Origin: Macrostomum lignano
Taxonomy: Eukaryota
Assembly (NCBI GenBank): GCA_002269645.1
Contig: NIVC01001393.1
Span: 62,001 to 126,000, forward strand
Direction of reading: 5' to 3'
Length of the DNA: 64,000 nucleotides
A program made the translations under genes and the position numbers. The notes beneath the pieces were generated by a model that saw only the letters and a list, made by a program, of their open reading frames with translations, was not told where the DNA came from and ran no database searches. This document shows, in pieces, positions 7,815 through 29,668 of this stretch (the first letter of the stretch is position 1; each line of letters starts with the position of its first letter).

Positions 7815-7906
7815 CTAGGACTGCTGGGCGGAGTCCGCCGACTCAGCAATAGGCAGCACAGTGAACCGGCCGACGTGGGTAGCGCAACCGGAGCCCCGTC
7901 TGGCGC
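7815..7906 (-). CDS. WNK: Probable terminal coding exon of the WNK kinase (xARRGSGCATHVGRFTVLPIAESADSAQQS*)
   Basis: Acceptor TGTACAG at 7907, phase 1 compatible with the upstream exon ending 13080; encodes GRFTV, an RFxV motif of the kind WNKs use to dock SPAK/OSR1; GC-rich island; TAG at 7817-7815. Confidence 0.6.
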
Positions 7907-8274
7907 CTGTACAATGCGGGGGCGGAGTATTGTAATTGCTACTTACAGTAGCGCTGCCATGATTTCTGAATAAACTGCAATCCGATAAAACAGAAAAAGT
8001 ACACCAAAATACAATAAATAAAGGACATATATAATAAGCAATTGGGTGAGGCTTGGTTTCATCTGATGAAGCTTATGTTGATTCTGTGAAAATTCTGCTT
8101 TGGAAACGAAACAATTCTTCAAAGAAGCAACAACGACATAAGCGGAATTAGGTAGACATTGGCTAAGTAGGTGGTTGGCTGCGGTAAATAAAGGAGAATC
8201 ATCACTTTAAGATTCATCACTTTTGCACCCCTGGATCTGCCTCTCGGCCCCACACTCCTTGAGAATCTCTCTCC

Positions 8275-9550
8275 CTTGAGGGATTGGGATTCTGGGATTG
8301 GGGATTGGGATTCTCGGATTCGGGTTTGGGATTCTGGGATTGGGGATTGGGATTCTCGGATTCGGGTTTGGGATTCTGGGATTGGGGATTGGGATTCTCG
8401 GATTCGGGTTTGGGATTCTCGGATTCGGGATTGGGATTCTCAGATTCGGGTTTGGGATTCTCAGATTCGGGATTGGGATTCTCGGATTCGGGATTGGGAT
8501 TCTCAGATTCGGATCCGGATTCTCAGATTCGGGATTGGGATTCTCAGATTCGGGATTGGGATTCTCAGATTCGGGATTGGGATTCTCGGATTCGGGTTTG
8601 GGATTCTCAGATTCGGGATTGGGATTCTCAGATTTGGCATTGGGATTCTCAGATTCGGATCCGGATTCTCAGATTCGGATCCGGATTCTCAGATTCGGGA
8701 TTGGGATTCTCATGTTTCGGATCCGGATTCTCGGATTCGGGTTTGGGATTCTCGGATTCGGGTTTGGGATTCTCAGATTCGGGATTGGGATTCTCAGATT
8801 CGGGATTGGGATTCTCAGATTCGGATCCGGATTCTCAGATTCGGGATTGGGATTCTCAGATTCGGCATTGGGATTCTCAGATTCGGATCCGGATTCTCAG
8901 ATTCGGGATTGGGATTCTCATGTTTCGGATCCGGATTATCGGATTCGGGTTTGGGATTCTCGGATTCGGGTTTGGGATTCTCAGATTCGGGTTTGGGATT
9001 CTCGGATTCGGGATTGGGATTCTCAGATTCGGGATTGGGATTCTCATGTTTCGGATCCGGATTCTCGGATTCGGGTTTGGGATTCTCGGATTCGGGTTTG
9101 GGATTCTGGGATTCGGGATTGGGATTCTCGGATTCGGGTTTGGGATTCTCAGATTCGGGTTTGGAATTCTCAGATTCGGGTTTGGGATTCTCGGATTCGG
9201 GATTGGGATTCTCGGATTCGGGTTTGGGATTCTCAGATTCGGGTTTGGAATTCTCAGATTCGGGTTTGGGATTCTCGGATTCGGGTTTGGGATTCTGGGA
9301 CTCGGGATTGGGATTCTCAGATTCGGGATTGGGATTCTCATGTTTGGGATTGGGATTCTCAGATTTGGGATTGGGATTCTCAGATTTGGGATTGGGATTC
9401 TCAGATTTGGGATTGGGATTCTCAGATTTGGGATTGGGATTCTCAGATTTGGGATTGGGATTCTCAGATTTGGGATTGGGATTCTCAGATTTGGGATTGG
9501 GATTCTCAGATTCGGGATTGGGATTCTCATGTTTGGGATCCGGATTCTTA
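8275..9550. repeat. 21-bp GGGATT-based minisatellite (GGGATTCTCAGATTCGGGATT)
   Basis: Direct periodicity; explains ORFs 8276..9592, 8284..9582, 8298..9551 and 8877..9530. Confidence 0.96.
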
Positions 9551-9833
9551 GATCACAAAATCACAAAACATGGGGTAGCTAAATTTACATAAACTTATTA
9601 ACAATAGGCTAAGCATGCCAAATAAAATATTGCCTTTTTAATTAGCCAATACTTTAAATAAATCAACAAAAACGCTTTTTATAGCAGCGACTGAAAAATT
9701 GAAAAAGCAACTGCCCCAATCCGAGTAACAATACCTAGGCAACGTGAGCAAACCCAAAAAAGTCTCCGAGATGAAATCAGAGCAAAAAAACAGCCAGTGC
9801 TCAGGCCCTTAATCCTACGCATTTTTTTTCATT

Positions 9834-9901
9834 TCAAGAGTCGGTAGACGGCGGAACTCTCGTCAGGCGCGTCGGTCGAACGGCCGCTGCCCCAGTTCCG
9901 C
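9834..9901 (-). CDS. WNK: Candidate alternative or cassette 3' exon of WNK (GGTGAAAVRPTRLTRVPPSTDS*)
   Basis: Long pyrimidine tract plus TTGCAG acceptor at 9902; GC-rich island; in phase 1 it reads 22 codons to TGA at 9836-9834. Confidence 0.35.
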
Positions 9902-10204
9902 CTGCAAGCGACGCGTTGAAAGGAAAAACAATAATAAAAACACCAAGCCTACCGATATGTATCGAAAAAACTGTTTCCGTAGCATTTTTTGTTTCAAATT
10001 CTAATCAAAGTCTAAGTCTAATAAACCAAAAGTTTCTCCATGTTTCACCTTTTCAGAAAAAAGCTGGTTTCTTAGAAACTGTAGCGACTTTCTAAGAAAA
10101 AGTTATATTTTTAAACACTGTGACTGTGATTCCATTACTCCGGGGAATAACAGCAAAATGAAATTATTTACAAAATGCCAACTACCTGAAAATAAAAACA
10201 ATTT

Positions 10205-11066
10205 TCAACCATCCACGGGAGTGATTCTCAACCATCCACGGGAGTGATTCTCAACCATCCACGGGAGTGATTCTCAACCATACACGGGAGTGATTCTCAA
10301 CCATACACCGGAGTGATTCTCAACCATACACGGGAGTGATTCTCAACCATACACGGGAGTGATTCTCAACCATACACGGGAGTGATTCTCAACCATACAC
10401 GGGAGTGATTCTCAACCATACACGGGAGTGATTCTCAACCATACACGGGAGTGATTCTCAACCATACACGGGAGTGATTCTCAACCATACACGGGAGTGA
10501 TTCTCAACCATACACGGGAGTGATTCTCAACCATACACGGGAGTGATTCTCAACCATACACGGGAGTGATTCTCAACCATACACGGGAGTGATTCTCAGC
10601 CATACACCAGAGTGATTCTCAACCATACACCGGAGTGATTCTCAACCATACACGGGAGTGATTCTCAACCATACACGGGAGTGATTCTCAACCATACACG
10701 GGAGTGAGTCTCAACCATACACGGGAGTGATTCTCAACCATACACGGGAGTGATTCTCAACCATACACGGGAGTGATTCTCAGCCATACACCAGAGTGAT
10801 TCTCAACCATACATGGGAGTGATTCTCAGCCATACACCAAAGTGATTCTCAACCATACACCAGAGTGATTCTCAGCCATACACCGGAGTGATTCTCAACC
10901 ATACACCGGAGTGATTCTCAACCATACACGGGAGTGATTCTCAAACATACACGGGAGTGATTCTCAGCCATACACCGGAGTGATTCTCAACCATACACCG
11001 GAGTGATTCTCAACCATACACGGGAGTGATTCTCAAACATACATGGGAGTGATTCTCAACCATACA
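10205..11066. repeat. 23-bp minisatellite (CAACCATACACGGGAGTGATTCT)
   Basis: About 37 near-identical tandem copies. Confidence 0.97.
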
Positions 11067-11554
11067 GCAATTCTCTTTAAACTGTTCAATAATCAGGTGT
11101 CAGCATAGAATTAGCCAGTATTCATAGTGTCCAATGGGCACCACTTCATTTTAAGTATCTTTTAATACGCTCTGATACAGTGGCTGCATGAGAAACACAC
11201 TAAAGGCAATGCTTACTTATGACATGCAAAGTTATGCTTATTAATTTACTAAAACTACTAAAACGGTGTACCATGCAAATCTACTACGGGATATACACAA
11301 AATACCATAAATCTAGGCAAAATATAAATGCCTGTATAATGCATCATATACTACTAAGTAGGCAATTAAGTGCATTCGAGTGCATTGCTGTCATCACACG
11401 TTCATGCTGCTGTCATTAGCTCGTAGCAATAAAAGACCACGCACAAATCTAGCATTCTAGATTGTTGGTAACCATGGATACCGAGGCTTTTAAGAAGTTT
11501 TTGTACTTTAGGGACCAATGTTTCACAATGACAACCAACGGTGAATCTAAGGAA

Positions 11555-12915
11555 ATCCCTGCCGCTAAAGGAATTCTATTCAAGAGATATGTTTGTTGCT
11601 ATCCAAGGGAAACCCCAGTTTGTAATAGTATAAAAAGTCCCTGTTGCTAAGAGATAGTAGTATCCAAGGTGAGTTCCTGTTGCTAAGAGATAGTAGTATC
11701 CAAGGTGAGTCCCTGTTGCTAAGAGATAGTAGTATCCAAGGTGAGTTCCTGTTGCTAAGAGATAGTAGTATCCAAGGTGAGTTCCTGTTGCTAAGAGATA
11801 GTAGTATCCAAGGTGAGTTCCTGTTGCTAAGAGAGAGTAGTATCCAAGGTGAGTTCCTGTTGCTAAGAGATAGTAGTATCCAAGGTGAGTTCCTGTTGCT
11901 AAGAGATAGTAGTATCCAAGGTGAGTTCCTGTTGCTAAGAGATAGTAGTATCCAAGGTGAGTTCCTGTTGCTAAGAGATAGTAGTATCCAAGGTGAGTTC
12001 CTGTTGCTAAGAGAGAGTAGTATCCAAGGTGAGTCCCTGTTGCTAAGAGATAGTAGTATCCAAGGTGAGTTCCTGTTGCTAAGAGAGAGTAGTATCCAAG
12101 GTGAGTTCCTGTTGCTAAGAGAGAGTAGTATCCAAGGTGAGTTCCTGTTGCTAAGAGATAGTAGTATCCAAGGTGAGTTCCTGTTGCTAAGAGATAGTAG
12201 TATCCAAGGTGAGTTCCTGTTGCTAAGAGAGAGTAGTATCCAAGGTGAGTTCCTGTTGCTAAGAGATAGTAGTATCCAAGGTGAGTTCCTGTTGCTAAGA
12301 GAGAGTAGTATCCAAGGGAAACTCCTGTTGCTAAGAGAGAGTAGTATCCAAGGGAAATCTATGTTGCTAAGAGAGAGAATAGTATCCAAAGGAATTTTCT
12401 GTCTCTAAGCGATACTGGTATCTAAGGAAAGCTAAATCCCTGTTGCTAAATGTTATTAGTATTCGAGGGAAATCCCTGTTGCTAAGTAATATTAGTATCC
12501 AAGGCAATTCTCTCTTGCTAAGTGATATTAGTATCCAAGGGAAATCCTTGTTGCTAAGAGATAGTAGCATCCAAGGGAAATCCCTGTTGCGAATTGATAT
12601 TATTATCCAAGGGAAATCCTATTTGCTAAGAGATAGTAGCACCCAAGGGAAATCCCTGTTGCTAAGTGATATTAGTATCCAAGGGAAATCCCTGTTGCTA
12701 AGTGATATTAGTATCCAAGGGAAATCCCTGTTGCTAAGTGATATTAGTATCCAAGGGAAATCCCTGCTGCTAAGTGATGTCAGTATCCAAGGGAAATCCC
12801 TGTTGCTGAGAGAGTAGTATCCGAGGTAAATCCCTGCTGCTAAGTGATATCAGTATCCAAGGGAAATCCCTGCTGCTAAGTGATATCAGTATCCAAGGGA
12901 AATCCCTGTTGCAAT
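11555..12915. repeat. 36-bp minisatellite (CCTGTTGCTAAGAGATAGTAGTATCCAAGGTGAGTT) with diverged flanks
   Basis: Direct periodicity; homogenised core about 11640-12310; explains ORFs 11580..12389 and 11644..12408. Confidence 0.96.
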
Positions 12916-13079
12916 GCTGCTAAGACATTAGGAACGAAATAAATCGGTAGTATGATTGCACCAGTTATTGATGGCATGGGCATGAAACTAAACTACACTA
13001 CAAAAGCAAAATATTAACAAACTGGCATGCCTGCTATGAAACAGAGGGCAAGAATCTCTATATAAAATTTGAGATATAC

Positions 13080-13169
13080 CCATTGGCGAGTGACTGGGCG
13101 GGTTCAGCACTAGACGATCTGGCAACAAAGGTTGCTGGGATTCACTTGTATTAACTGATAACCATTCGT
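13080..13169 (-). CDS. WNK: Probable 90-bp internal exon of WNK (DEWLSVNTSESQQPLLPDRLVLNPPSHSPMG)
   Basis: Acceptor GCATTTCAG at 13170, open in phase 1, donor G|GTATAT at 13079 (weak); symmetric phase 1-1. Confidence 0.5.
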
Positions 13170-13254
13170 CTGAAATGCAAATAGTTTCATAGAAATACGA
13201 GCTGCGCTCAGATTTCAGATTTATCTAAATCCCGTTGAGCAATATACACTCCAT

Positions 13255-13436
13255 GATCAATACTCCCTACACACCCATGACCAATGCTCCCTAGACACCC
13301 CATGACCAATGCTCCCTACACACCCATGACCAATGCTCCCTACACACCCATGACCAATGCTCCCTACACACCCATGACCAATGCTCCCTACACACCCATG
13401 ACCAATGCTCCCTAGACATCCCATGACCAATGCTCT
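13255..13436. repeat. 24-bp minisatellite (CCATGACCAATGCTCCCTACACAC) starting at a WNK donor site
   Basis: About 7 copies immediately after the GTGAGA donor at 13439. Confidence 0.93.
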
Positions 13437-13439
13437 CAC

Positions 13440-14057
13440 CACCCTCCCCAAACACGGACGGGCGCTCACCCAGGCCAGTGGGAGTGCCAGGTGCACCCTG
13501 GTCAGTCTCCACCCGTTGAACGTCGCCGCAGTCGGCACCGTTCGTCGCAGTCGCAGCCGATGCCGACGCCTGCACGGCGGACAGCACGGCTAGCACGTCT
13601 TCCAGACGCATCTGCGGCCCGCCATCGAAGGCCAAGCAGGTGACGGTGGTGGCCGGCGCCTGCGTTCCAGACGCACTCGGGCAGAGCAGAAGGCAACGCC
13701 CGGCCTCAAGTCCTGGCAGAGGCTGCGGTGGCAGGCCCGGCAAGAGCAGCTGAGCGGAGCCGGAGCTCATCGTTGTCCAGTGCTGCATGAGCCGCTGCTG
13801 GCTGAGCGGGTGAGCGGCTGTAGGCGTGGTCGGAGGCGCCGGCGACTCTGCTCGGCGCCGCTGCTGCTGCTGCTGATTGGCGCCGCTGCTTTCCTTCCGA
13901 CAGCGGACCGCAGGCGAGACCGGCGCCGACAGAGCCGCTTCGCCGGCGTCCAGAGACAGCAACAGCGGCGAGGATGGCAGGTCAGCAGAGACCGGCGCCA
14001 CCAGCGATGACGTCACGGTGGCGGTCACGGTGGCGTTCACAGAGGAACTTGAGATGA
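13440..14057 (-). CDS. WNK: WNK exon, low-complexity C-terminal region (polyQ, Pro/Ala-rich)
   Basis: Acceptor TTAATTTCAG at 14058 (phase 1), donor G|GTGAGA at 13439; lies within ORF 13291..14109. Confidence 0.78.
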
Positions 14058-14111
14058 CTGAAATTAATCCGAATGTGGGATCGTTCAAATAAGTTGCTCT
14101 TATAGGCACTC

Positions 14112-14550
14112 AGATCCCACACCGGGATAAAATGGGGATCAATGGGAGCTAAGAGTCATTGAAATCCCACATTGGGATAAAATGGGGATCAATGGGAGCC
14201 AAGAGTCATTGAAATCCCACAATAGGATAAAATGGGGATCAATGGGAGCTAAGAGTCATTGAAATCCCACAATAGGATAAAATGGGGATCAATGAGAGCT
14301 AAGAGTCATTGAAATCCCACATTGGGATAAAATGGGGATCAATGGGAGCTAAGAGTCATAGAAATCCCACACCGGGATAAAATGGGGATCAATGGGAGCT
14401 AAGAGTCAACTAAACCCCACAATAGGATAAAATGGGGATCAATGGGAGCTAAGAGTTATTGAAATCCCACATTGGGATAAAATGGGGATCAATGGGAGCT
14501 AAGAGCCCCTTAAATACCAAACCAGGATAAAATGGGTTCAATGGGAGCTC
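14112..14550. repeat. 50-bp intronic minisatellite (GAAATCCCACATTGGGATAAAATGGGGATCAATGGGAGCTAAGAGTCATT)
   Basis: About 9 copies filling the WNK intron 14595-14058. Confidence 0.95.
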
Positions 14551-14595
14551 AGTCACATACAATGATTTTGAATAAATATGAAATCCAACACTCAC

Positions 14596-15100
14596 AAGAA
14601 TTAGACGCTAAAAAGTCGTACTGAAGCCCGTTGCCATGGTGCTGCCCGTTCATAATGGCCGACATGGACGCAGACATGGCGGCTGGCAAGCTTTCTACCT
14701 GCGGCTGGTAGCCCGGACTGCCCGGCACGCCAAAGTAGCCAAAGTTTTGATCAGCGGGCGCCTTTGGCGATTCGTTCAGCGGCTGCTCGCACAGACAGTC
14801 GGCCAGTTGCTGTTGCTGCTGCGGCTGCGAGTCGACCTGGCTGACCTGCCTGGAGACGGCCGCGGACGAAGGAGCCGTGACAGGCGAGGCCTGGCCTTGG
14901 CCGCCGCTGCCGCCGCCGCCCGCCTCCTCCTCCCAGCGCCCGTTGTAGTCGTCTCGCTCCTTGATGACGCGCCGTTTCGCTTCGGCCCATCGGCGCGCCT
15001 GCAGGCCGAGCCGAACGATGCAGGTGTCCAGCTCGCTGTCCTTCTCGGGCTCCGAGTCGCGGATCAGGTCCATGAAGTAGTTCCAGATGCCCGCTAGCAC
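14596..15100 (-). CDS. WNK: WNK exon (VLAGIWNYFMDL...FLASNS)
   Basis: Acceptor CTCAG at 15101 (phase 0), donor T|GTGAGT at 14595; within ORF 14549..15100. Confidence 0.82.
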
Positions 15101-15154
15101 CTGAGCGATATTGTTTCAGATGGGGCTTGAATGTCTTGCAGTTATTGGATTGGG

Positions 15155-15690
15155 ATAGATTAGCAATCCATTCTATCCCTAATCCACATGGGCTAGATTA
15201 GCAATCCATTCTATCCCTAATCCACATGGGCTAGATTAGCAATCCATTCTATCCATAATCCACATGAGCTAGATTAGCAATCCATTCTATCCATAATCCA
15301 CATGGGCTAGATTAGCAATCCATTCTATCCCTAATCCACATGGGCTAGATTAGCAATCCATTCTATCCCTAATCCACATGGGCTAGATTAGCAATCCATT
15401 CTATCCATAACCCACATGAGCTAGATTAGCAATCCATTCTATCCATAATCCACATGAGCTAGATTAGCAATCCATTCTATCCATAACCCACATGGGCTAG
15501 ATTAGCAGTCCATTCTATCCCTAATCCACATGGGCTAGATTAGCAGTCCATTCTATCCCTAATCCACATGGGCTAGATTAGCAATCCATTCTATCCCTAA
15601 TCCACATGGGCTAGATTAGCAGTCCATTCTATCCATAATCCACATGAGCTAGATTAGCAGTCCATTCTATCCATAATCCACATGAGCTAT
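15155..15690. repeat. 38-bp intronic minisatellite (AATCCACATGGGCTAGATTAGCAATCCATTCTATCCCT)
   Basis: About 14 copies filling the WNK intron 15711-15101. Confidence 0.96.
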
Positions 15691-15711
15691 ATTATCCCAA
15701 GAATATCGCAC

Positions 15712-16255
15712 CTTCTTCCGGTAGTACAGCAGTTGGTTTCTGACGCTGTTCACCACCTTCTGTCGCAGCCGACGCAGCTGATCGGCGCTGAGCCCCGGCG
15801 CGTCCGACTCGGCCAAATCGGCAAACGAATTAACGACATTCTCCAAATCCTCATCGATGAAGCAGTCGAGCTGGAATTCGAATCCGACACCGGGCAGGAT
15901 TCGCATCTGCTGCTGCAGCGCTCGATCGTTCACCACCAGACGAAAGTCGGCCACGTGATAGTAACGACCGGGATCGCCGACGTACTCGACGTCAGCCGAC
16001 AAGGCCCGATGCCTGGCCGTCGAAGAAGTGCCAGATATTTGTTGCTGGGCGGCGGCTACCGTCGGTTGAGTCGGCGACACGGTATCCTCGTCCTGCCAGC
16101 GGACTGTCTGGGACAGGCGGACCAACTGCACCTGAACTGGGATCGGCTTCAGATTGAAGATTTGCAACGAGAGCAGCTCCTCGGAGGTGGGCCGGAAATC
16201 CGGCAGCGGATGCGTGCACGTGAAAAATATGTCCCGGATTTCCGGATTCTCCAGC
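15712..16255 (-). CDS. WNK: WNK exon: kinase C-lobe end (RLENPEIRDIFFTCTHPLPDFRPTSEELL) plus PF2/autoinhibitory-like segment (FRLVV...GFEFQL)
   Basis: Acceptor AAATCAG at 16256 (phase 2), donor AAG|GTGCGA at 15711; resembles kinase subdomain XI and the WNK autoinhibitory domain. Confidence 0.85.
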
Positions 16256-16319
16256 CTGATTTGCAGAGAAGGCGGGTGGGATCGAATGCCTATGGATAAT
16301 AGATGTTGAATAGATCACG

Positions 16320-17020
16320 AGACTAGTTGTCACCTAGACATTCAGCTGTCAACTAGTTGTCAACTAGATGATGACTAGATGCAAACTAGATCTAGATGAT
16401 GACTAGATGCAAACTAGATCTAGATGATGACTAGATGCAAACTAGATCTAGATGATGACTAGATGCAAACTAGATCTAGATGATGACTAGATGCAAACTA
16501 GATACTGACTAGATGCAAACTAGATGATGACTAGATGATGACTAGATGCAAACTAGATACTGACTAGATGCAAACTAGATGATGACTAGATGCAAACTAG
16601 ATACTGACTAGATGCAAACTAGATACTGACTAGATGCAAACTAGATACTGACTAGATGCAAACTAGATACTGACTAGATGCAAACTAGATGATGACTAGA
16701 TGATGACTAGATGCAAACTAGATACTGACTAGATGCAAACTAGATGATGACTAGATGCAAACTAGATACTGACTAGATGCAAACTAGATACTGACTAGAT
16801 GCAAACTAGATACTGACTAGATGCAAACTAGATACTGACTAGATGCAAACTAGATACTGACTAGATGATGACTAGATGCAAACTAGATACTGACTAGATG
16901 ATGACTAGATGATGACTAGATGCAAACTAGATACTGACTAGATGCAAACTAGATACTGACTAGATGCAAACTAGATACCGACTAGATGCAAACTAGATGA
17001 TGACTAGATGCAAACTAGTT
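16320..17020. repeat. About 22-bp intronic minisatellite (GACTAGATGCAAACTAGATACT and variants)
   Basis: Fills nearly all of the WNK intron 17036-16256. Confidence 0.95.
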
Positions 17021-17036
17021 GCCAATCAATTCTCAC

Positions 17037-17366
17037 CTGTTCAGCACCTGAGGCGGAGTGGTGCTAGCAATCCTTTGCCAGACATCCATAAAGTTCTGGC
17101 ACTCCTGATACGGCACACAGTTGGTGACCAGCTCCACCATGAGCAGGCCAAAGGCGAATATGTCGACTTTCTCGTCGTATCGCTCCTGCAGCATCTCCGG
17201 AGCCATGTAGCCCAGAGTGCCCAGCATGGTCTTGCGGCTCTGAGTCTTGGCAGTGGCCAGGCCGAAGTCGCCAATTTTGATGTTATAATATTCGTCAGGA
17301 TTCTCGCCATCGGCTATGAACACGTTCTCCGGCTTGAGGTCGCGGTGGATCACTGGCGGGTTCATT
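17037..17366 (-). CDS. WNK: WNK kinase exon, subdomains VIb-X (HRDLKPEN, DFG, APE)
   Basis: KMNPPVIHRDLKPENVFI...IKIGDFGLAT...GTLGYMAPEM...YDEKVDIFAFGLLMVELVT; acceptor at 17367, donor AG|GTGAGA at 17036. Confidence 0.93.
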
Positions 17367-17569
17367 CTGCGATTAAAGGAAATCGGCAAAATAGTTACAA
17401 CTCATTAAAAGATATAAAAATATTTACGTGAAACTATTTAAACAAAGACCAGTCCTATATTGGAAAACCCAACATTCGTTTTGTTAATTCATGTTCAAAT
17501 AATAAAGACTCTTTCTCCGGGATGAGACGAAGACTGATTCTGAAGTATTAAACAAAAACTTATTGAGAA

Positions 17570-18225
17570 ACATGATGAAACTGACTTATTTAGGAGCACG
17601 ATGAAACAAAGACCTATTTAGAAACATTATGAAACAAAGATCCATTTAGAAACACGAGGAAACAAAGATTCATTTAGAAACATGATGAAACAAAGATCCA
17701 TTTAGAAACACGATGAGACTTATTTAGAAACACGATGAAACAATGACTCATTTAGAAACATGATGGAACAAAGACTTATTTATAAACACGATGAAAGACT
17801 CATTTAGAAACACGAGGAAACAAAGATTCATTTAGAAACATGATGAAACAAAGACTTATTTAGAAACATGATGAAAGACTTATTTAGAAACACGAGGAAA
17901 CAAAGATTCATTTATAAACATAATGAAACAAAGACTTATTTAGAAACACGATGAAAGACTCATTTAGAAACACGATGAAACAAAGACTCATTTAGAAACA
18001 CGATGAAACAATGACTCATTTAGAAACATGATGGAACAAAGACTCATTTAGAAACACGAGGAAACAATGACTCATTTAGAAACATGATGGAACAAAGACT
18101 CATTTAGAAACACGAGGAAACAATACTCATTTAGAAACATGATGGAACAAAGACTCATTTAGAAACACGAGGAAACAATACTCATTTAGAAACATGATGG
18201 AACAAAGACTCATTTAGAAATACTC
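17570..18225. repeat. About 28-30-bp AT-rich intronic minisatellite (CATTTAGAAACACGATGAAACAAAGACT)
   Basis: Imperfect tandem copies in the WNK intron 19599-17367. Confidence 0.92.
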
Positions 18226-19074
18226 ATGAAGACTCGTTGCTACGGATTAAACAAAAACTTATTTTTTATTTTACTTGCGCAAATACTGGTGATTTTTGTA
18301 TAATAGAAATGCAGTATTATTTTGCAAAATAATGCAAATGAAATCAAATAAAGCATGTTCAGTTCTAGGAGCTCAAAAATTCCATGAAGTGTAGCATTAT
18401 TAATGAGCTAGTGAAGCCATGAGCAATGAGCCCAACCAACTAGTCAAGAAGACAAATAAATGCGCAATAGCAGGGTCAAAGCAACGCTTTGAAACTAACA
18501 AAATGGCCTAATAGTGCACAGTTGTAAAAAAGACAAGGCGCTCTCACAATTTCTCGGCTGTAGTCACGCGACTTAGTTTATCTTCTCAATGCCTAAGACT
18601 GAGAAGACTGCAAGTGCGCAGTCTAGCTAAAAGAAATTCTTATCAATTATACAGCTAAAGAATTGTCGCCAAGCCCCCCCCCCCAGCCCAGGGTGCAGAG
18701 TACAGGGACATGTACAACAGCCCAGGTTTATGTTTCATAACGTGTGTCATGACACACCAACTTTTAATTTTGGCATACTGAAATTTGGACTTTTGAATTA
18801 AATTTTCATAATTTGTTACAATATTTCACACAATTCAGTTGCCAAATTGTCGATAATACACAGACAAATAAGGGCAAAGCAAGTAAGCGGGGTGTTCAAA
18901 AGTAGCCTTATCACCATGAAATATTGAAGCAGAAATTTTGCAAATACAGTTTCAACTTAGGCTGGATTATTAGCCAGCGTGTGAATGTGAATGTGAATAT
19001 TCGGGTTTTGGTCACCATGGCTTGTACAGATTCACAATTGTGAAGATTTTAAAGCTTTGGTTCCGTGAAGATTC

Positions 19075-19520
19075 GAGTTAGTAAGTATTTTTAGTGAAAA
19101 TTCGGATTCGGGTTGGTGAAAATTTGGGTTGCAGATTCAGGTTGAAGATTTGGGTTGGTGAGAGATTCGGGTTGGTGAGAGATTCGGGTTGGTAAAGATT
19201 CGGGTTGGTGAAGATTCAGGTTGGTAAATAATCAGGTTGGTGAAGATTCGGGTTGGTAAATATTCAGGTTGGTGAAGATTCGGGTTGGTAAATATTCAGT
19301 TTGGTGAAGATTCGGGTTAGTAAATATTCAGTTTGGTGAAGATTCGGGTTGGTGAAGATTCGGGTTGGTAAAGAGTCGGGTTGGTGAAGATTCGGGTTGG
19401 TGAAGATTCGGGTTGGTGAAGATTCGGGCTGGTGAAGATTCGGGTTGGTGAAGATTCGGGCTGGTGAAGATTCAAGTTAAAGATTTGAGTTGGTGAAGAT
19501 TCAGTTTGATGAAGATTCAG
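19075..19520. repeat. 16-17-bp intronic minisatellite (GAAGATTCGGGTTGGT)
   Basis: Tandem copies near the donor end of the same intron. Confidence 0.92.
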
Positions 19521-19599
19521 TTTTTGAAGGTTTGTCTGGTGTTTGGTGATGATGAAGGTTAAATTTAAAGTCCAACAAAAGCATCTAAACCAAACTCAC

Positions 19600-19865
19600 T
19601 TGTGATGCATGTGCCTCAGTCCCTCGAGAATCTGCTGCATCCAGGACTGAAACACGCTGAACTCAACCACAGCCTCTCTGGTCTGCTCATTATAGAAAGT
19701 CTTCATCTTCTCCTTGAGCGTGCCCTCGCTCATGAACTCGGTGACAATCACGGTGGCTTTCACTTTCTCGCCTCTCTCGCCGTTCTCGTCTAGTTCAAAA
19801 TAGCAGTCGAGCAAGTCATAATAGCGGACTATGTTGGGGTGCTCGCACTTGATCATCATCTCAAC
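19600..19865 (-). CDS. WNK: WNK kinase exon, subdomains III-VIa (VEMMIKCEHPNIVRYYD...IVTEFMSEGTLKE...QILEGLRHMH)
   Basis: Acceptor CGCAG at 19866, donor AA|GTGAGT at 19599; typical kinase motifs. Confidence 0.93.
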
Positions 19866-19884
19866 CTGCGAGTTAGCGGGTTTA

Positions 19885-20285
19885 AGGTTAGCAATTTTAA
19901 GGATTGTGATTTTGAAGATTGGGATTCTAGAGATTGTGATTTTAGGGATTGGGATTTAAGGGATTGTGATTTTAGGGATTGGGATTCTAGAGATTGTGAT
20001 TTTAGGGATTGGGATTTTAGGGATTGGGATTTAAGGGATTGTGATTTTAGGGATTGGGATTCTAGGGATTGTGATTTTAGGGATTAGGACTTTAGGGATT
20101 GGGATTTAAGGGATTGTGATTTTAGGGATTGGGATTCTAGGGATTCGAATTTTAGGGATTCGGATTTTAGGGATTGGGATTCTAGGGATTCGAATTTTAG
20201 GGATTCGGATTTTAGCGATTGGGATTCTACGAGTAGGAATGGTATTTTAGTGATTGGGATTCTAGGGATTGATATTTTAAGGATT
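19885..20285. repeat. About 15-bp intronic repeat (GGGATTTTAGGGATT) rich in TTAGGG
   Basis: Fills most of the WNK intron 20360-19866. Confidence 0.92.
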
Positions 20286-20360
20286 AAGATCTTTAGGAAA
20301 GGGATTGTGAAGGATTATTTGTAAAAATTGTAGAGTCTCACAAAAAAGATAGGATCTCAC

Positions 20361-21252
20361 CTCTTTGCGAACCTGATCCCTCTCGGCCGGTTTGTCCTTC
20401 CCAACCTGGTACTTGAGCTCGCACCAGGCTATGGGCCGGCCCTGCTCCCGATCGTAGCCCCTGTACACTCGTTTGTAGGCGCCTTCGCCGCACTTTAAAT
20501 TATGCTTAATCCACCGGCCACACGGACTGACCGCGATGCCCCGCTGCTTCAGCTGCAGCTCCATCTGGTGCCGGCGCCACATCTGCGCCTCGCGCCGGCG
20601 CTGCCTCTCTTTCTGTTTCTCCTCGCGCGACCTGCTGTGATGCGACTGCTGCTGCTGGGAAGAATTAGTAGACGATTGACGGGACAGCTTGACGTGAGGA
20701 GATGGCGGCTGTTGCTGCTGCTGTGGCTGCTGCTGCACCTGCGACTGAGCAGCCGCAGTTGACGACGCCTCCTCTGACGAAGAAGCAACAACAGCGCCGA
20801 CGATGGAACCGACAGAGATTGTCGTAGCCGATACAGCAGGCGACGACGGCGAAGGCGATGTTGAAGCCGAGGCGAAGGTGCGAATCGCCGCAGCAGCAGC
20901 AGCAGCCGGCGGCGGCAGCGTCGGCATGGCAGTTGTTGCCAAGCTGATGTCGCCATTGACAACCAGAACTGGCGGCTCGGCAACCCCGGCAGGCGATACG
21001 GAGGGAGCGGCCGGCAACTCAGGGCAGGACTCGTCCGCCTGCGGCGCCACAACAACGACAACTCCGGTGGTGGGAACTGCTGTAGACGTCGTCGGGTCGC
21101 CGTCGTTGTCGTCTTTGCTGTCGACCATCAGCCGCGGCGGCGCCTCCTTCGAAGACGAACTGGCAGCGGAGTCGGCGGCGTCGGCGCCAGAGCTGCCAGG
21201 CGGCGCCATTCGATGCGCTGGCTGCGGCTCCGTCAGCGACAGCCTGCGGATT
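20361..21252 (-). CDS. WNK: WNK exon: disordered N-terminus plus kinase subdomains I-II (CGEGAYKRVYRGYDREQGRPIAWCELK)
   Basis: Lys in the glycine loop (GEGAYK) and Cys in place of the subdomain II Lys (AWCEL) are WNK hallmarks; acceptor TTGGCAG at 21253 (phase 2), open into ATG 21209; donor GAG|GTGAGA at 20360. Confidence 0.92.
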
Positions 21253-21361
21253 CTGCCAAGGAGATGAGGGGAGCGGGACGGAAATTAGAAATTTCCCAAT
21301 TTAAAAGTTTAGAGCTGCAAAGGCGAAACACTCTCCAATAGCTCAATAACTTTGCGGCCTA

Positions 21362-21474
21362 CCCCCAAGGCGCAGAGAGTGTACATGCCAGAAAGTCACG
21401 GCCGCTGTACACCCTGTGTGAGCGCGTGCCTGCGTACATATCTGTGCGTGTCTTCAGGAGTCAGCGGAATGGGC
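21362..21474 (+). repeat. Unclassified dispersed repeat, copy A (GCAGAGAGTGTACATGCC...GCCGCTGTACACCCTG)
   Basis: Homologous to 39490-39620 (-), 40341-40560 (-) and 53640-53754 (+). Confidence 0.8.
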
Positions 21475-21489
21475 TTGACGACTGACAAA

Positions 21490-21522
21490 CCCACTAACTA
21501 ACTAACTTATTAACTAACCAAT

Positions 21523-21559
<37 letters not shown>

Positions 21560-21865
21560 GACTAACTAACTAACTAACTAACCAATTAACTAACTAACTA
21601 ACCAATTAACTAATTAACTTATTAACTAACCAATTAACTAATTAACTAACTAACTAACTAAGTGACTAACTAACTGACTGACTAACTAACTAACCAATTA
21701 ACTAATTAACTAACTAACTAACTAACTAGCTAACTAACTGACTAACTAACTAAATAAATAACTAACTAACTAACTTACTAACTTATTAACTAACCAATTA
21801 ACTAACTAACTAGCTAGTTACCTAACTAATATATTAACTAACTGTTCAATTAACTAACAAATAAC
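21490..21865. repeat. (AACT)n microsatellite
   Basis: Direct periodicity. Confidence 0.95.
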
Positions 21866-22364
21866 TAATACTACATGCACGTCTTACCAAGTGGAAACGA
21901 AAATATTTGCCAATGCAGTCCCTTGACAATTTATTGTTTAACGCTAAGTGAATCTCTTTAAATCTGTGTTTATTTGTTTAGTGGCAAAATTAGGCCAGTT
22001 AATGGCTTGGACAGCCGCAGGTATTTTTATAACCTAAAGCAAAGCGCCGGGCACAGAGGCAGGGGAGTAGGGGGCGGATTGGGGTCAACTGCTCTCGCCA
22101 CTCCCGCAGTCCAGTCAAGTTCGCTGAGTGCAATGGGCAAAGGTAGGCCGGAGGTGTGAATAGGGATACTTTGACCGATATATACTACTAGCAGCGGTAA
22201 GTATAGCTTTAATCTGGAAGGAATATATTAATAAATACAATTCTTTATTGCTCGATATATAAGGGGCCAATACTTTCACTAGCTGGGAGCTAGATCTGAA
22301 AACCAATTAAACAGATTGGATAATATAAAGGTTATGGTTGATTAACTTTGCTGACTACAAAGTG

Positions 22365-23275
22365 TTCGGATTATGAAGTTAGGGGGTCATAGAATTAGGA
22401 GATTATGGAGAAGGGAATCATGAGGAGAGATAGAAGCAGGGGGTTATGAAGTAGTTTATTATGAAGCAGGGGATTATGAATTAGGGGATTATGAAGTAGG
22501 GGATTATGAAGTAGGGGATTATGAAGTAGGGGATTATGAAGTCGGGGACTATGAAGCAGGGGATTATGAAGTAGGGGATTATGAAGTAGTTTATTATGAA
22601 GCAGGGGATTATGAAGTAGAGGATTATGAAGTAGGAGATCATGAAGCAAGGGATTATGAAGTAGGGGATTATGAAGTAGTTTATTATGAAGCAGGGGATT
22701 ATGAATTAGGGGATTATGAAGTAGGGGATTATGAAGTAGGGGATTATGAAGTAGGGGATTATGAAGTAGGGGATTATGAAGTCGGGGACTATGAAGCAGG
22801 GGATTATGAAGTAGGGGATTATGAAGTAGTTTATCATGAAGCAGGGGATTATGAAGTAGGGGATTATGAAGTAGGGGATTATGAAGTCGGGGACTATGAA
22901 GCAGGGGATTATGAAGTAGGGGATTATGAAGTAGTTTATCATGAAGCAAGGGATTATGAAGTAGGGGATTATGAAGTAGGGGATTATGAAGTAGTTTATT
23001 ATGAAGCAGGGGATTATGAAGCAGGGGATTATGAATTAGGGGATCATGAAGCAAGGGATTATGAATTAGGGGATCATGAAGCAAGGGATTATGAAGCAGG
23101 GGATTATGAATTAGGGGATCATGAAGCAAGGGATTATGAATTAGGGGATCATGAAGCAAGGGATTATGAAGTAGTTTATTATGAAGCAGGGGATTATGAA
23201 GCAGGGGATTATGAAGCAGGGGATCATGAAGCAGGGGATTATGAAGCAGGGGATTATGAAGCAGGGGATTAGGAA
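22365..23275. repeat. 15-bp intronic minisatellite (GGGGATTATGAAGYA)
   Basis: About 60 copies; explains ORF 22395..23159 (HNPLL repeats). Confidence 0.96.
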
Positions 23276-23346
23276 GCTTGCTGCTTGAGTTTCGGGACCA
23301 TTAAGTTTGGGGAATACGAATATTATGTACTATGAGGTAAACTCAC

Positions 23347-23759
23347 TCAACAAGCCGACAAGCTGAGTAGGAGCCGCTGTTAGACCCGCTAGCGGAATCA
23401 TCTAACAGAGTTTCCCTGATTGTCACCCGTTTGCGCAGCACCCGAGGGCCGCCGCCAATGCTTGAGCGCAGCGCACTCCTGCCAGGCGGCGGCAGGGGCG
23501 GCGGCGGCGGCGCAGGTGGAGGCGGTGGCGGCGGCAGCCGAACAATCGCCGAGGTTGGCGTCACAGCCGGCGTGTTGCACGGCGGCTCCGTGGCCGAGCG
23601 GCACCAGCCGTTGCTGTCAGCCGATGCGGCCGGCGCTAGCAGCAGCGGAGGCGTCGACGCCAAATAAGGCGGCTGCGGCGACGGCAACGCAGCCGACGTA
23701 GACGACGCAGAGGTCAGGCCGAGCGGCCTCGACGGTGGGCTATCAGCGCCGTGCGCCAT
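23347..23759 (-). CDS. WNK: Probable first coding exon of WNK (MAHGADSPPSRP...polyPro...RKRVTIRET...RLVE)
   Basis: ATG 23759 just after the acceptor TTTGTACAG/TTGCAG; donor GA|GTGAGT at 23346 is phase 2 and joins in frame to the acceptor at 21253 (...VE|IRRLSLTEP...). Confidence 0.75.
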
Positions 23760-27301: not shown

Positions 27302-29668
27302 TTAACCCCCCCCCCCACACTGATGGTACGCCAGGCGTGCCATGGGTCTCATTTAACCATACACTGAGAATACGTGTCTATGGCCTAGATGGTTTAGCAT
27401 AAATGACTTTCTCGACATCCCCATAAGTCACGGATGGCACGCTGTGCGTACCATGTTATTTTTTCGCAATTTTTTAACTATATTTGACTGCAAGTACAGG
27501 ATAGATAACAAAAACTTTAAAAGCGGACAACAAAAGAACAAAAAACAATTAGGTAAACAATATTTAAAAACTCGATGAGGCATTTAGGAGGAGCGTTTTG
27601 AATTTCGTATTCTGAACGTAATTAAGTTTTGCACCGTACCACCAGTGCAACTACTGTGCTGCTGCAGTGTGCCAATTCTGAAAGCATGGGACAGCACACA
27701 GCCCGGGCTCTCCTGGGCAACCAGCGCATACGAACACCGTTCTTTTGGCCACACCATTGCTGTAGCAGACTCTGCATCGCTTTGTCGGCCTCGCATTGGC
27801 ATCTGTCGGCGGCAGCTTCGATGGCGCATGCTGTGAGACGGCCCTGCGCTTCGATGTATTCAGACGTTTGCCCTGGCCTGTCTGCTCCATGAGAGTGCGG
27901 ATCGCAGCTTCCAAAAATTCAACGAATTTGATTTTCCTTCCTCCTTGGCAGTTGCAGATCCAGGCATTGTGGACCAACTGCAGCAAAATGTGGAACCCGA
28001 GCTTCTGGTGCCATCTGTATGTTCTTCTCCCCGCACTGTAAGGCGCTGCAGTGCTGCATCAAGGGGATCAACGCCTCCCATGTACTTATTGTACTGCAGC
28101 ACCGAATTCGGTTTTAAAACTGACTCCTCCGCTCCGCCTCGGATCACTCGCCTCACTTCCGTGCTTTCAGCAACACCGTGCGTGTCCAACAAGTACACAG
28201 TTTTGCGACCGCTTGCCTTCCTGTCTACCAGCTTGACTGCGAGAACATCGCCGCGGCGCATCTGGGAGTGACTGACGGGTTGCAGGGGCAGCACTTTCAG
28301 CTCATTCGGCACACCTCGATTGGGGCTCACCGTCCCAGTCAGTAAACTACTGCGTTCCAGCAGAAACTGCGCCAGACGGAGCGATGTGAACCAGCTGTCA
28401 CAGAAGACCTTGTGCCCCAGGTCCAGCAAATTTTTACTCAATTCAACGACGATCTTCTCGCTCATCGACAAATTCCCGCAGTTTAATCCATCTCCAAACT
28501 TGTCGTTATCCTGCTTAGCAGCATGTACACGAAAGTTCCACAGAAAACCTGTCGAAGCTTCCGTCAAGCAGTAGACCTTGATGCCGAATCTGGCACGCTT
28601 GTTGGGCATGAACTGCCGAAAAATGAGCCTGCCCTTGTACATGACCAGTTCTTCATCGACAGACACCTCTTGACTTGGGCTAACATTGGGCGGGCAATGT
28701 TAAGAAAAGGTTGAATCTTTTTCAAAGAGTCCTGGTGGTTGACGGTGGTGCAGTCGTAAAATCGAAGGAATGATAAATCTGCACAAACCGATCCCTTCCA
28801 AGGCAATGTTCTTTCTGGAAGTATACGCCGCCGTAGAAGTCTCCCATGGACCAGTACATGTGCATTTCGGGCTTCTTCACAAGACCCATGTACAGAACGA
28901 TTACTAGAGACTTCTTCACCTCATTGTCGGTACACGGTCTCCAAGTTGATAGCAAATTGGGAAAAGCTCCATCCTGATCTTCAGCTATCAAATGTTGAAG
29001 CTCCATGTCAGCTCGGGCGTTGGTCCAGATGCAAATGGCAGACACCAGATCAGCGGTGAGAAAGTGCTGCAGATAGAATTGCACCTGGGCCATTTTACCT
29101 TCAGGAGCTTGTGCTTGGATGTCTGGGTTCAGGCCAGGCACAGCAAGGAATTCGGGCAGATCGCTGAGACGCAAATCCTCACCATCTTGAGCAGCTGTCC
29201 ATTCATTCTCGTTAGCGAACTCGACTCCATGCTCAGCTACTTCCGCATTACTCTCACCATCTTCCTCGTCCAGCAACTCTCCATCGACATTCGCTGTCGC
29301 TGCCATCGCTGGTGAAAACAGGGGAACCTTCCATAATTGCAATTGCAGCCTCGTCAATGTTGTTAGCCATTTTGAGTCTTGTGTAAGTTGAATTAATTAT
29401 ACAGTAAAGTTCGAAAAGTTTGTGGAATCAGGAAAAATTTACTGCATGATTCTGGACTGTTTTACCATAGACAGTTTTAAAATAGACTGTAGTATCAGTC
29501 AAGCACAAATTTTAGGACAGTTGGAACTCAATAGTTAAGTAAGCCAGTCAGTAGTCTATGGGAATTTCTTGAGCCGTAAATTGACACAGTGCTCTGTGGT
29601 AGTGGGAAAGAGATTGAAGCCCCGTGGCATGCCATCCGTCAATAAGCTCAGTGCGCTACTGGTTTTAA
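27302..29668 (-). mobile_element. piggyBac-like DNA transposon (PGBD4-type), boundaries approximate
   Basis: Transposase homology inside; TTAA followed by CCC at 27302; candidate TTAA at 29665-29668; subterminal inverted motifs CCCRTGGCAYGCC / CGGATGGCAYGC near both ends; terminal TIRs match poorly. Confidence 0.75.
27651..29370 (-). pseudogene. piggyBac transposase with at least 4 frameshifts
   Basis: MANNIDE...SDGSDSE start at 29370; motifs SVDE, DSWFTS, NKYMGGVD (DDD triad) and C-terminal Cys-rich RCRVC...CAGC...LCAVPCFQNWH, spread over ORFs 28722..29357, 28564..28806, 27860..28666 and 27651..27986. Confidence 0.88.

Follow-up and report, generated by a model that had tools for sequence, protein, structure and literature searches.

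A 64,000-nucleotide stretch of the genome of the free-living marine flatworm Macrostomum lignano (NCBI GenBank assembly GCA_002269645.1, contig NIVC01001393.1, positions 62,001 to 126,000 of the forward strand; the whole stretch is called the window below, and coordinates are counted from its first nucleotide) carries on its minus strand a gene for a WNK-family protein kinase in which the DLG motif of canonical WNKs reads DFG. The same DFG signature is common to Macrostomum, monogeneans, tapeworms and flukes, that is, to all the flatworm WNKs that were recovered. The gene is very probably the WNK ortholog of flatworms, in which DFG has become fixed, and this ortholog would be strongly diverged. 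The broader picture, in which this ortholog with its fixed DFG has also lost part of the inhibition by ions that characterizes other WNKs, is drawn by analogy with engineered mammalian mutants and can, on balance, be favoured.

The kinase domain is spread over exons 2–5 (20537–16153, minus strand). Its glycine loop, GEGAYK (20472..20489, minus strand), contains the catalytic lysine equivalent to WNK1 Lys233, and the AWCEL motif (20415..20429, minus strand) contains the cysteine, equivalent to WNK1 Cys250, that replaces the usual beta-3 lysine. Both assignments come from a MAFFT alignment with 134 canonical WNKs, in which the glycine-loop lysine is aligned to K233 in every WNK. Exon 3 encodes IVRYYD (19832–19815, minus strand), with a Tyr at the Phe283 position, and TVIVTE (19754–19737, minus strand), with an Ile at the Leu299 position. 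Exon 4 encodes the catalytic loop HRDLKPEN (17324..17347, minus strand; HRDLKCDN in canonical WNKs), the DFG motif (GAC TTC GGC, 17261..17269, minus strand), which places a Phe at the WNK1 Leu369 position, and the activation and P+1 loop SRKTMLGTLGYMAPE (17195..17239, minus strand), with Ser at the Ser378, Thr at the Ser382, Leu at the Ile384 and Gly at the Glu388 position. Beside DFG and HRDLKPEN, the kinase reads RKTMLGTLGYMAPE, and the minus strand of 17230–17350, which lies inside exon 4, encodes ...VIHRDLKPENVFIADGENPDEYYNIKIGDFGLATAKTQSRKTMLGTLGYMAPE.... An initial annotation of the window had reported a WNK-type kinase with DFG in this interval, and its observation is confirmed in every detail. 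The DFG at 17269–17261 and the Phe codon TTC at 17266–17264 agree exactly with the computed codon positions, and GEGAYK and AWCEL are real, but they lie two exons upstream, outside 17230–17350. The motifs that had been taken as usual for WNKs also hold among the 134 canonical representatives (DLG in 134/134; HRDLKCDN, Ser382 and GTPEF near-invariant).

The assignment to the WNK family is based on several searches. Pfam detects a protein kinase (Pkinase) domain at 1.8e-47, and a phmmer search of the PDB retrieves the kinase domains of WNK3 and WNK1 at E-values of 2.6e-60 to 1e-58, followed by PKR from 2.5e-23 and then by NEK2/7, MST3, CDPKs and SPAK/OSR1. In an exhaustive HMMER search of 1.84 billion representative proteins, of which the best 150 matches were listed, the single-domain non-flatworm matches near the top of those listed are all canonical WNKs. 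The window protein keeps the helix-C Glu, the HRD Asp, the catalytic-loop Lys, the Asp and Gly of DFG, the Thr that precedes APE and APE itself, and the equivalents of E268, D349, K351, D368, G370 and T386 are kept in all 10 of the aligned flatworm sequences. Because of the WNK matches, the glycine-loop lysine, the beta-3 cysteine and these catalytic residues, the protein, judged by its sequence, is a true WNK-family kinase, and it is apparently intact and catalytically competent rather than a pseudokinase. The WNK-type call of the initial annotation thus stands, with WNK1 and WNK3 by far the best PDB matches. Two other possibilities were considered and rejected. A chance resemblance to WNKs does not agree with an E-value margin of 37 orders of magnitude over other kinase families. 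An NRBP-type pseudokinase does not agree with the retention of all catalytic residues and with the match to WNK structures, as NRBP lacks catalytic residues. An AlphaFold model of the kinase domain, built from a 7-sequence flatworm alignment, reached a pLDDT of 41 and was unusable.

After the M. lignano product itself, the HMMER search returns only flatworm proteins, at 283–308 bits among the matches listed. These come from Paragonimus heterotremus and Dicrocoelium dendriticum, from Schistosoma japonicum (annotated as WNK4), from Echinococcus granulosus/multilocularis (annotated as WNK1) and from one unnamed sequence. They are followed by a gap, below which canonical WNKs score at most 236 bits. 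Word-index homology searches, which covered proteins of up to about 800 amino acids and missed even M. lignano proteins of the same sequence as the query, added sequences from the monogeneans Cichlidogyrus and Protopolystoma, the tapeworm Schistocephalus and the flukes Echinostoma and Clonorchis, as well as an unnamed fragment. The flatworm sequences that span the motifs read GEG[AG]YK, AWCE[LF], HRDLK[PAS][ED]N and [IV]GDFGLA, and nearly all of those that span the P+1 loop read RKTMLGT.G[YF]MAPE. DFG is also found in the fragments from Echinostoma and Clonorchis, in the unnamed fragment P0291 and in the published sequence from Schistosoma haematobium (PMC4669435).

The extent of the divergence was assessed in a MAFFT alignment, in WNK1 numbering, of 134 canonical representatives and 10 flatworm kinase domains. 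The numbering follows a WNK1 reference sequence that matches a retrieved representative at 99% identity and gives K233, C250, L369 and S382 at their expected positions. Five positions identical in 134/134 canonical sequences are changed in flatworms: Leu369 to Phe (10/10), Glu388 to Gly (10/10), Phe283 to Tyr in M. lignano or Cys in neodermatans, Tyr420 to Thr, Val, Ile or Ser, and Cys352 to Pro, Ala or Ser. Leu299 (about 132/134 canonical sequences) is Ile in 10/10 flatworm sequences, and the near-invariant Ser382 is Thr in 10/10. Two positions kept in canonical WNKs are also kept in flatworms, namely Leu371 and, in 9/10 sequences, Ser378 (Thr in P0001, the product of a second M. lignano gene). 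The canonical DLG set spans two other spiralians (the mollusc Babylonia and the fast-evolving rotifer Rotaria) as well as nematodes, insects, a barnacle, Limulus, amphioxus and vertebrates. The relatives of flatworms keep DLG, which is therefore the state in those relatives. The initial annotation had viewed the kinase as an odd paralog and had linked it to osmoregulation in an aquatic invertebrate. The first view is not retained, as the same signature is fixed in the WNKs of all flatworm groups sampled. An adaptation of this particular aquatic species was rejected too, as endoparasitic flukes and tapeworms share the signature. Being fixed across these groups, the signature is therefore an old, lineage-wide feature.

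The possible consequences for ion sensing can be drawn from engineered mammalian enzymes. The mutants L369F and L369F/L371F, like L322F/L324F in WNK4, give a chloride-insensitive and more active kinase (PMC7606576). In WNK3, L295F reduces the inhibition by K+, and the mutants WNK1 E388A and WNK3 E314A/Q have wild-type activity but are less sensitive to Cl-, K+ and water (PMC13397483). Glu388 is needed for normal inhibition by Cl-, K+ and water, and Tyr420 is part of a conserved water network (PMC13397483). The description of the Leu-to-Phe change as the standard chloride-desensitising mutation, on which the initial annotation had relied, is thus borne out by both studies (PMC7606576, PMC13397483). 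The flatworm WNK combines Phe369 with Gly388, has two further pocket side chains changed and has lost Tyr420; the pocket side chains Phe283/Leu299/Leu371 read Tyr/Ile/Leu in M. lignano and Cys/Ile/Leu in neodermatans. The M. lignano protein thus appears to lack the sequence features of the chloride-sensing WNK class while having those of the WNK family. The case for ion insensitivity would also be stronger than initially proposed, as Glu388 is Gly and both Phe283 and Leu299 are changed. Because Leu369Phe and Glu388Ala/Gln each make mammalian WNKs less prone to inhibition by Cl-, K+ and water, a reduced ion sensitivity of the flatworm WNK has, by analogy, a slightly better than even chance of being real. 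The wider proposal, that flatworms as a whole use a WNK devoid of direct inhibition by Cl-, K+ and bound water through L369F, E388G and the pocket changes, extends the same analogy and is more tentative, with a somewhat less than even chance.

Combining these data, the regulation of the flatworm WNK might be viewed as follows. The inactive dimer, which is stabilised by ions and water, would be weakened or absent, and intracellular Cl- and K+ would have far less effect on the kinase, or none. Activation would proceed by autophosphorylation of the activation-loop Thr (Thr570 in the 1209-codon model), a phosphorylatable residue at the Ser382 position that is accompanied by a Ser at the Ser378 position. 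The kinase would be restrained by a post-kinase autoinhibitory-like domain, lineage-specific elements would also help to set its activity, and its output would be directed to a SPAK/OSR1-type kinase through a C-terminal RFxV motif.

The same substitutions could also be read as compensatory: in the flatworm WNK ortholog, the altered pocket would continue to bind Cl- at the amides of the DFG Gly and of the following Leu, and the DFG swap would have no regulatory meaning. Three of the four pocket side chains have changed together across the clade while Leu371 and Gly370 are kept, and the large-to-small F283C change of neodermatans accompanies the small-to-large L369F change. In flukes and tapeworms, this pair of changes could conserve the packing volume. 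Chloride is bound through backbone amides in WNKs (PMC7606576), and WNK1 has additional chloride sites near T301 and I470 (PMC13397483). However, position 283 of M. lignano is a Tyr, which is not smaller, and its pocket should therefore be more crowded. Every flatworm sequence has Gly in place of Glu388, a residue that is independently needed for sensitivity to Cl-, K+ and water, and has lost Tyr420 too. Moreover, the Leu-to-Phe change alone was reported to desensitise WNK1, WNK3 and WNK4 (PMC7606576, PMC13397483). A compensated pocket thus seems unlikely. Other data also weigh against a loss of ion inhibition. The alignment contains 132 columns with at least 97% invariance across canonical WNKs, and at 38 of these every flatworm sequence departs from the canonical residue. 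DFG is therefore one of many lineage-wide changes, and, given these 38 positions, a reshaping of the pocket, and not just its filling, may have taken place. The functional proposal is thus an analogy applied to a domain that is changed at many other sites. Furthermore, WNK3 has DLG, yet it is active already at high cell chloride (PMC7606576); the coupling between motif and phenotype is therefore loose even in mammals.

Beyond the kinase domain, the region 15865..15945 (minus strand) encodes the sequence FRLVVND...GFEFQLD, which, according to hhalign, is a probable WNK autoinhibitory/CCT-like (PF2-like) core; its fluke and tapeworm version reads NLRLRFRD...ESLEFDLD. The hhalign comparison of the flatworm and canonical WNK post-kinase regions gives a probability of 81% and an E-value of 1.2e-5 over 35 columns, and the match covers the canonical autoinhibitory core LRLRV.D...EAIQFEFD. 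Two results point in the other direction. Pfam finds no OSR1_C/CCT-like domain after the kinase domain of the window protein or of its Paragonimus ortholog, even at an E-value of 10. A Foldseek search of the PDB with an AlphaFold model of the region (6-sequence alignment, pLDDT 70.7) gives no significant match, the autoinhibitory domain of WNK1 (2LRU) being second with an E-value of 0.34. Taken together, the sequence similarity makes a post-kinase autoinhibitory-like domain likely. The last exon ends in ...THVGRFTVLPIAES..., which includes GRFTV (7871–7857, minus strand; RFxV at 7868–7857). This is a putative RFxV-type SPAK/OSR1 docking motif, one match per protein being close to chance expectation. 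The disordered tails of fluke and tapeworm orthologs also contain G[KR]FxV motifs. At the other end of the kinase domain, and directly before it, lies a basic coiled-coil-like stretch, REEKQKERQRRREAQMWRRHQMELQLKQRG (20538–20627, minus strand). In flukes, tapeworms and monogeneans its conserved counterpart reads KEERKKEREKKKEEEMLKKYQAEQEAKQK, and the stretch appears to be specific to the flatworm WNK clade.

That the gene is the flatworm WNK itself is suggested by the gene content of schistosomes, by the shared Cys250 and by the domain order, and not by the tree. The supplementary table of the S. haematobium kinome lists a single Other/WNK kinase, Sh_Smp_154440.1, the ortholog of S. mansoni Smp_154440.1, and its printed sequence is of the DFG type (PMC4669435). 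This kinome classed one copy as WNK and left a fragment, C_01296, unclassified (PMC4669435). This fragment, annotated as WNK1-like, is a near-identical part of the Sh_Smp_154440.1 gene. The sole other member of the PANTHER family in this kinome is NRBP (ortholog of Smp_046140), and an OSR1/gck-3 ortholog is present (PMC4669435). For one flatworm, S. haematobium, the published kinome thus settles the question of a paralog.

A neighbour-joining (NJ) tree of flatworm, canonical and protist WNK sequences (200 bootstraps) gives a less complete answer. The flatworm clade is found in 97% of bootstraps and a canonical clade excluding flatworms in 99%, while canonical and flatworm sequences are grouped in 4%; the tree cannot place the flatworm branch. 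The mean flatworm-canonical distance (1.09) even exceeds the protist-canonical distance (0.94). Such a long branch, together with the monophyly of the canonical WNKs, would also suit an ancient or neofunctionalised WNK-like paralog that acts outside the WNK-SPAK/OSR1 pathway on its own substrates through the P+1 loop GTLGY, a canonical DLG WNK existing, or having existed, elsewhere in the genomes of free-living flatworms. The conserved N-terminal basic coiled coil and the P+1 loop are proper to the clade, and DFG could be the old state, as unicellular WNK-like kinases often have it. A DLG-type WNK may also be present in the M. lignano genome beside the DFG gene. On the other hand, the HMMER matches listed include no member of the clade from outside flatworms, and canonical animal WNKs are the best non-flatworm matches (233 bits vs 178 bits for protists); both argue for orthology. 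The beta-3 Cys is common to flatworm and animal WNKs, whereas the unicellular relatives, protist and ichthyosporean, have Asn. Moreover, the DFG gene is the only WNK of the S. haematobium kinome (PMC4669435), the putative autoinhibitory-like domain is correctly placed and RFxV-type motifs are present. Such a paralog therefore appears distinctly improbable.

The whole coding sequence of the M. lignano WNK gene (7815..23759, minus strand) comprises 8 coding exons and 1209 codons, from the ATG at 23759 (MAHGAD) to the TAG stop codon at 7817–7815. The gene model was built with the closest database proteins as guides and every junction was checked: one open frame runs through the 8 exons of the spliced model, and all introns have GT-AG boundaries. 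All exons are on the minus strand. Exon 1 (23347..23759), delimited by tblastn of P0269 and P0121 against the window and a splice check, encodes a Pro/Ser-rich N-terminus. Exon 2 (20361..21252) encodes a low-complexity N-terminal part, the basic coiled-coil-like stretch and the start of the kinase domain; exon 3 (19600..19865), the region from helix C to the hinge; and exon 4 (17037..17366, with an AG acceptor and a GT donor), the catalytic loop, DFG and the activation segment. Exon 5 (15712..16255) encodes the end of the kinase domain, a linker and the post-kinase domain, and exon 6 (14596..15100) a conserved helix (LAGIWNYF...RRWAEAKRR) followed by a Gln/Ser-rich region. Exon 7 (13470..14057) encodes a low-complexity C-terminal region and exon 8 (7815..7906) the C-terminus with GRFTV and the stop codon.

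The product is identical to UniProt A0A1I8GZD7 (P0269, M. lignano) at 1080/1080 positions and almost identical to A0A1I8GJT5 (P0121, M. lignano). Several copies of the WNK gene are present in M. lignano, and some of the predicted proteins (P0002, P0007) are garbled. The second gene (P0001) has 83% identity over the query, 91% over the kinase domain and the same motifs. One could suspect that the Phe codon reflects faulty sequencing or assembly, or a pseudogene copy in decay, in view of these copies and garbled proteins and of the hidden polyploidy described for M. lignano (PMC10468722), but this is effectively refuted by the intact 1209-codon frame with its canonical splice sites and by the presence of the same Phe and signature in the 83%-identical P0001 and in the fluke, tapeworm and monogenean orthologs.

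The public models differ from the reading of the window at two places. Both UniProt models omit an in-frame 72-codon Ser/Ala/Gln-rich stretch (20840–20625, minus strand), which is not delimited by GT-AG boundaries. In P0121, a further 26 residues are missing, namely VEMMIKCEHPNIVRYYDLLDCYFELDE from the N-lobe of the kinase, although the first part of the exon 19865–19600 (19788–19865, minus strand) clearly codes for them. These gaps are probably annotation artefacts.

Each WNK intron sampled (12000–23000) has one or more minisatellite arrays that differ from those of the other introns, and such arrays occupy much of the shorter introns. They have units of 36 bp (25 copies, 12000–12912), 24 bp (8 copies, 13246–13435), 50 bp (9 copies, 14114–14549), 38 bp (14 copies, 15151–15694), 22/44/165 bp (16363–17022), 28/80 bp (17550–18220), 16 bp (26 copies, 19105–19518), 15 bp (26 copies, 19894–20297) and again 15 bp (42 copies, 22368–22994); an (ACTA)n repeat lies at 21493–21868. 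Elsewhere in the window, two adjacent open reading frames (ORFs) at 27860–29357 (minus strand) correspond to the two halves of a piggyBac-type DDE transposase (PF13843; E-values 9.5e-29 and 5.6e-10), which suggests a transposase gene interrupted by a stop codon or a frameshift. The segment 59472–63591 (plus strand) carries ORFs in different frames, in which Pfam detects a gag-like DUF7041, a retroviral-type aspartyl protease, a reverse transcriptase, an RNase H and an integrase zinc-binding domain; it forms an LTR-retrotransposon-type element that is apparently split over several frames. The segment 34001–38000 is markedly AT-rich, with a GC content of 0.27–0.31 compared with 0.40–0.60 in the rest of the window.

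The flatworm sequences are public and annotated as WNK1 or WNK4; the novelty lies in the reading of the motif pattern and not in the gene. In the searchable literature, no paper on flatworm WNKs was found, and none that mentions their DFG, their lack of Glu388 or a possible ion insensitivity; nothing was found there on natural DLG-to-DFG variants of WNKs or on Smp_154440 either. WNKs are regarded as conserved animal sensors of intracellular chloride, and now also of potassium and osmotic conditions, and the Leu of DLG is the usual target of mutation. The pattern would surprise those who treat DLG as universal in animal WNKs. The flatworm WNK can be viewed as a natural experiment in which the sensing residues are replaced and the catalytic machinery is kept. 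An ion-blind enzyme would show how a WNK pathway operates when it senses no ions; one that still senses chloride would reveal an alternative construction of the pocket. In the former case, ion sensing by WNKs would not be universal in animals, and the cell volume and protonephridial salt handling of flatworms would be controlled by other inputs, for which the clade-specific N-terminal coiled coil, the autoinhibitory-like domain and crowding are candidates. The regulatory pocket would then be precisely where the sole WNK of schistosomes and tapeworms departs from the enzymes of the host. The DFG gene being the only WNK of the S. haematobium kinome, this divergence may interest those who seek parasite-selective kinase ligands. 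M. lignano, for its part, is amenable to RNA interference (RNAi).

Among known systems, the canonical animal WNKs (human WNK1–4, Drosophila Wnk, C. elegans WNK-1) are the best PDB and HMMER matches by a wide margin, with about 43–46% identity over the kinase domain. The flatworm protein shares with them the glycine-loop Lys, the beta-3 Cys and the catalytic residues, as well as a predicted post-kinase autoinhibitory-like domain, an RFxV-type motif and a long disordered Gln/Pro/Ser-rich remainder. In contrast, M. lignano has DFG, Thr382, Gly388, Ile299, Tyr283 and HRDLKPEN, the spacing between DFG and the phospho-site is one residue shorter in flatworms, and a clade-specific basic coiled coil directly precedes their kinase domain. 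NRBP1/Madm, a pseudokinase that belongs to the same PANTHER family (PTHR13902), represents the sister family and closest relative of WNKs.

The flatworm Phe at position 369 recalls the engineered WNK1 L369F, WNK4 L322F/L324F and WNK3 L295F, and the lack of the Glu388 carboxylate recalls WNK1 E388A and WNK3 E314A/Q. Unlike these mutations, the flatworm changes are of natural origin, have become fixed in every lineage sampled, occur together in a single protein and are accompanied by many other substitutions. Leu371 is kept, unlike in the double Leu-to-Phe mutant, and residue 388 is Gly rather than Ala or Gln.

The unicellular WNK-like kinases (JGI 'WNK lysine deficient protein kinase'; Creolimax fragrantissima CFRG2963T1) also have the glycine-loop Lys, no beta-3 Lys and WNK-type C-lobe motifs. 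The metagenomic sequences P0009–P0012 and P0293–P0300 are short WNK-like kinases that probably originate from unicellular eukaryotes. Most of the unicellular WNK-like proteins retrieved have DFG (P0009–12, P0293–298, P0300), whereas P0299 has DLG and the ichthyosporean Creolimax DMG. A natural DFG in a WNK-type fold is therefore not unique to flatworms, and the residue that follows the Asp of this motif is variable outside animals. These proteins differ from the flatworm WNKs by their beta-3 Asn, by GTPE[YF]MAPE with its Glu388, by their short length and by the lack of a long animal-type tail, and they score below animal WNKs against the window protein.

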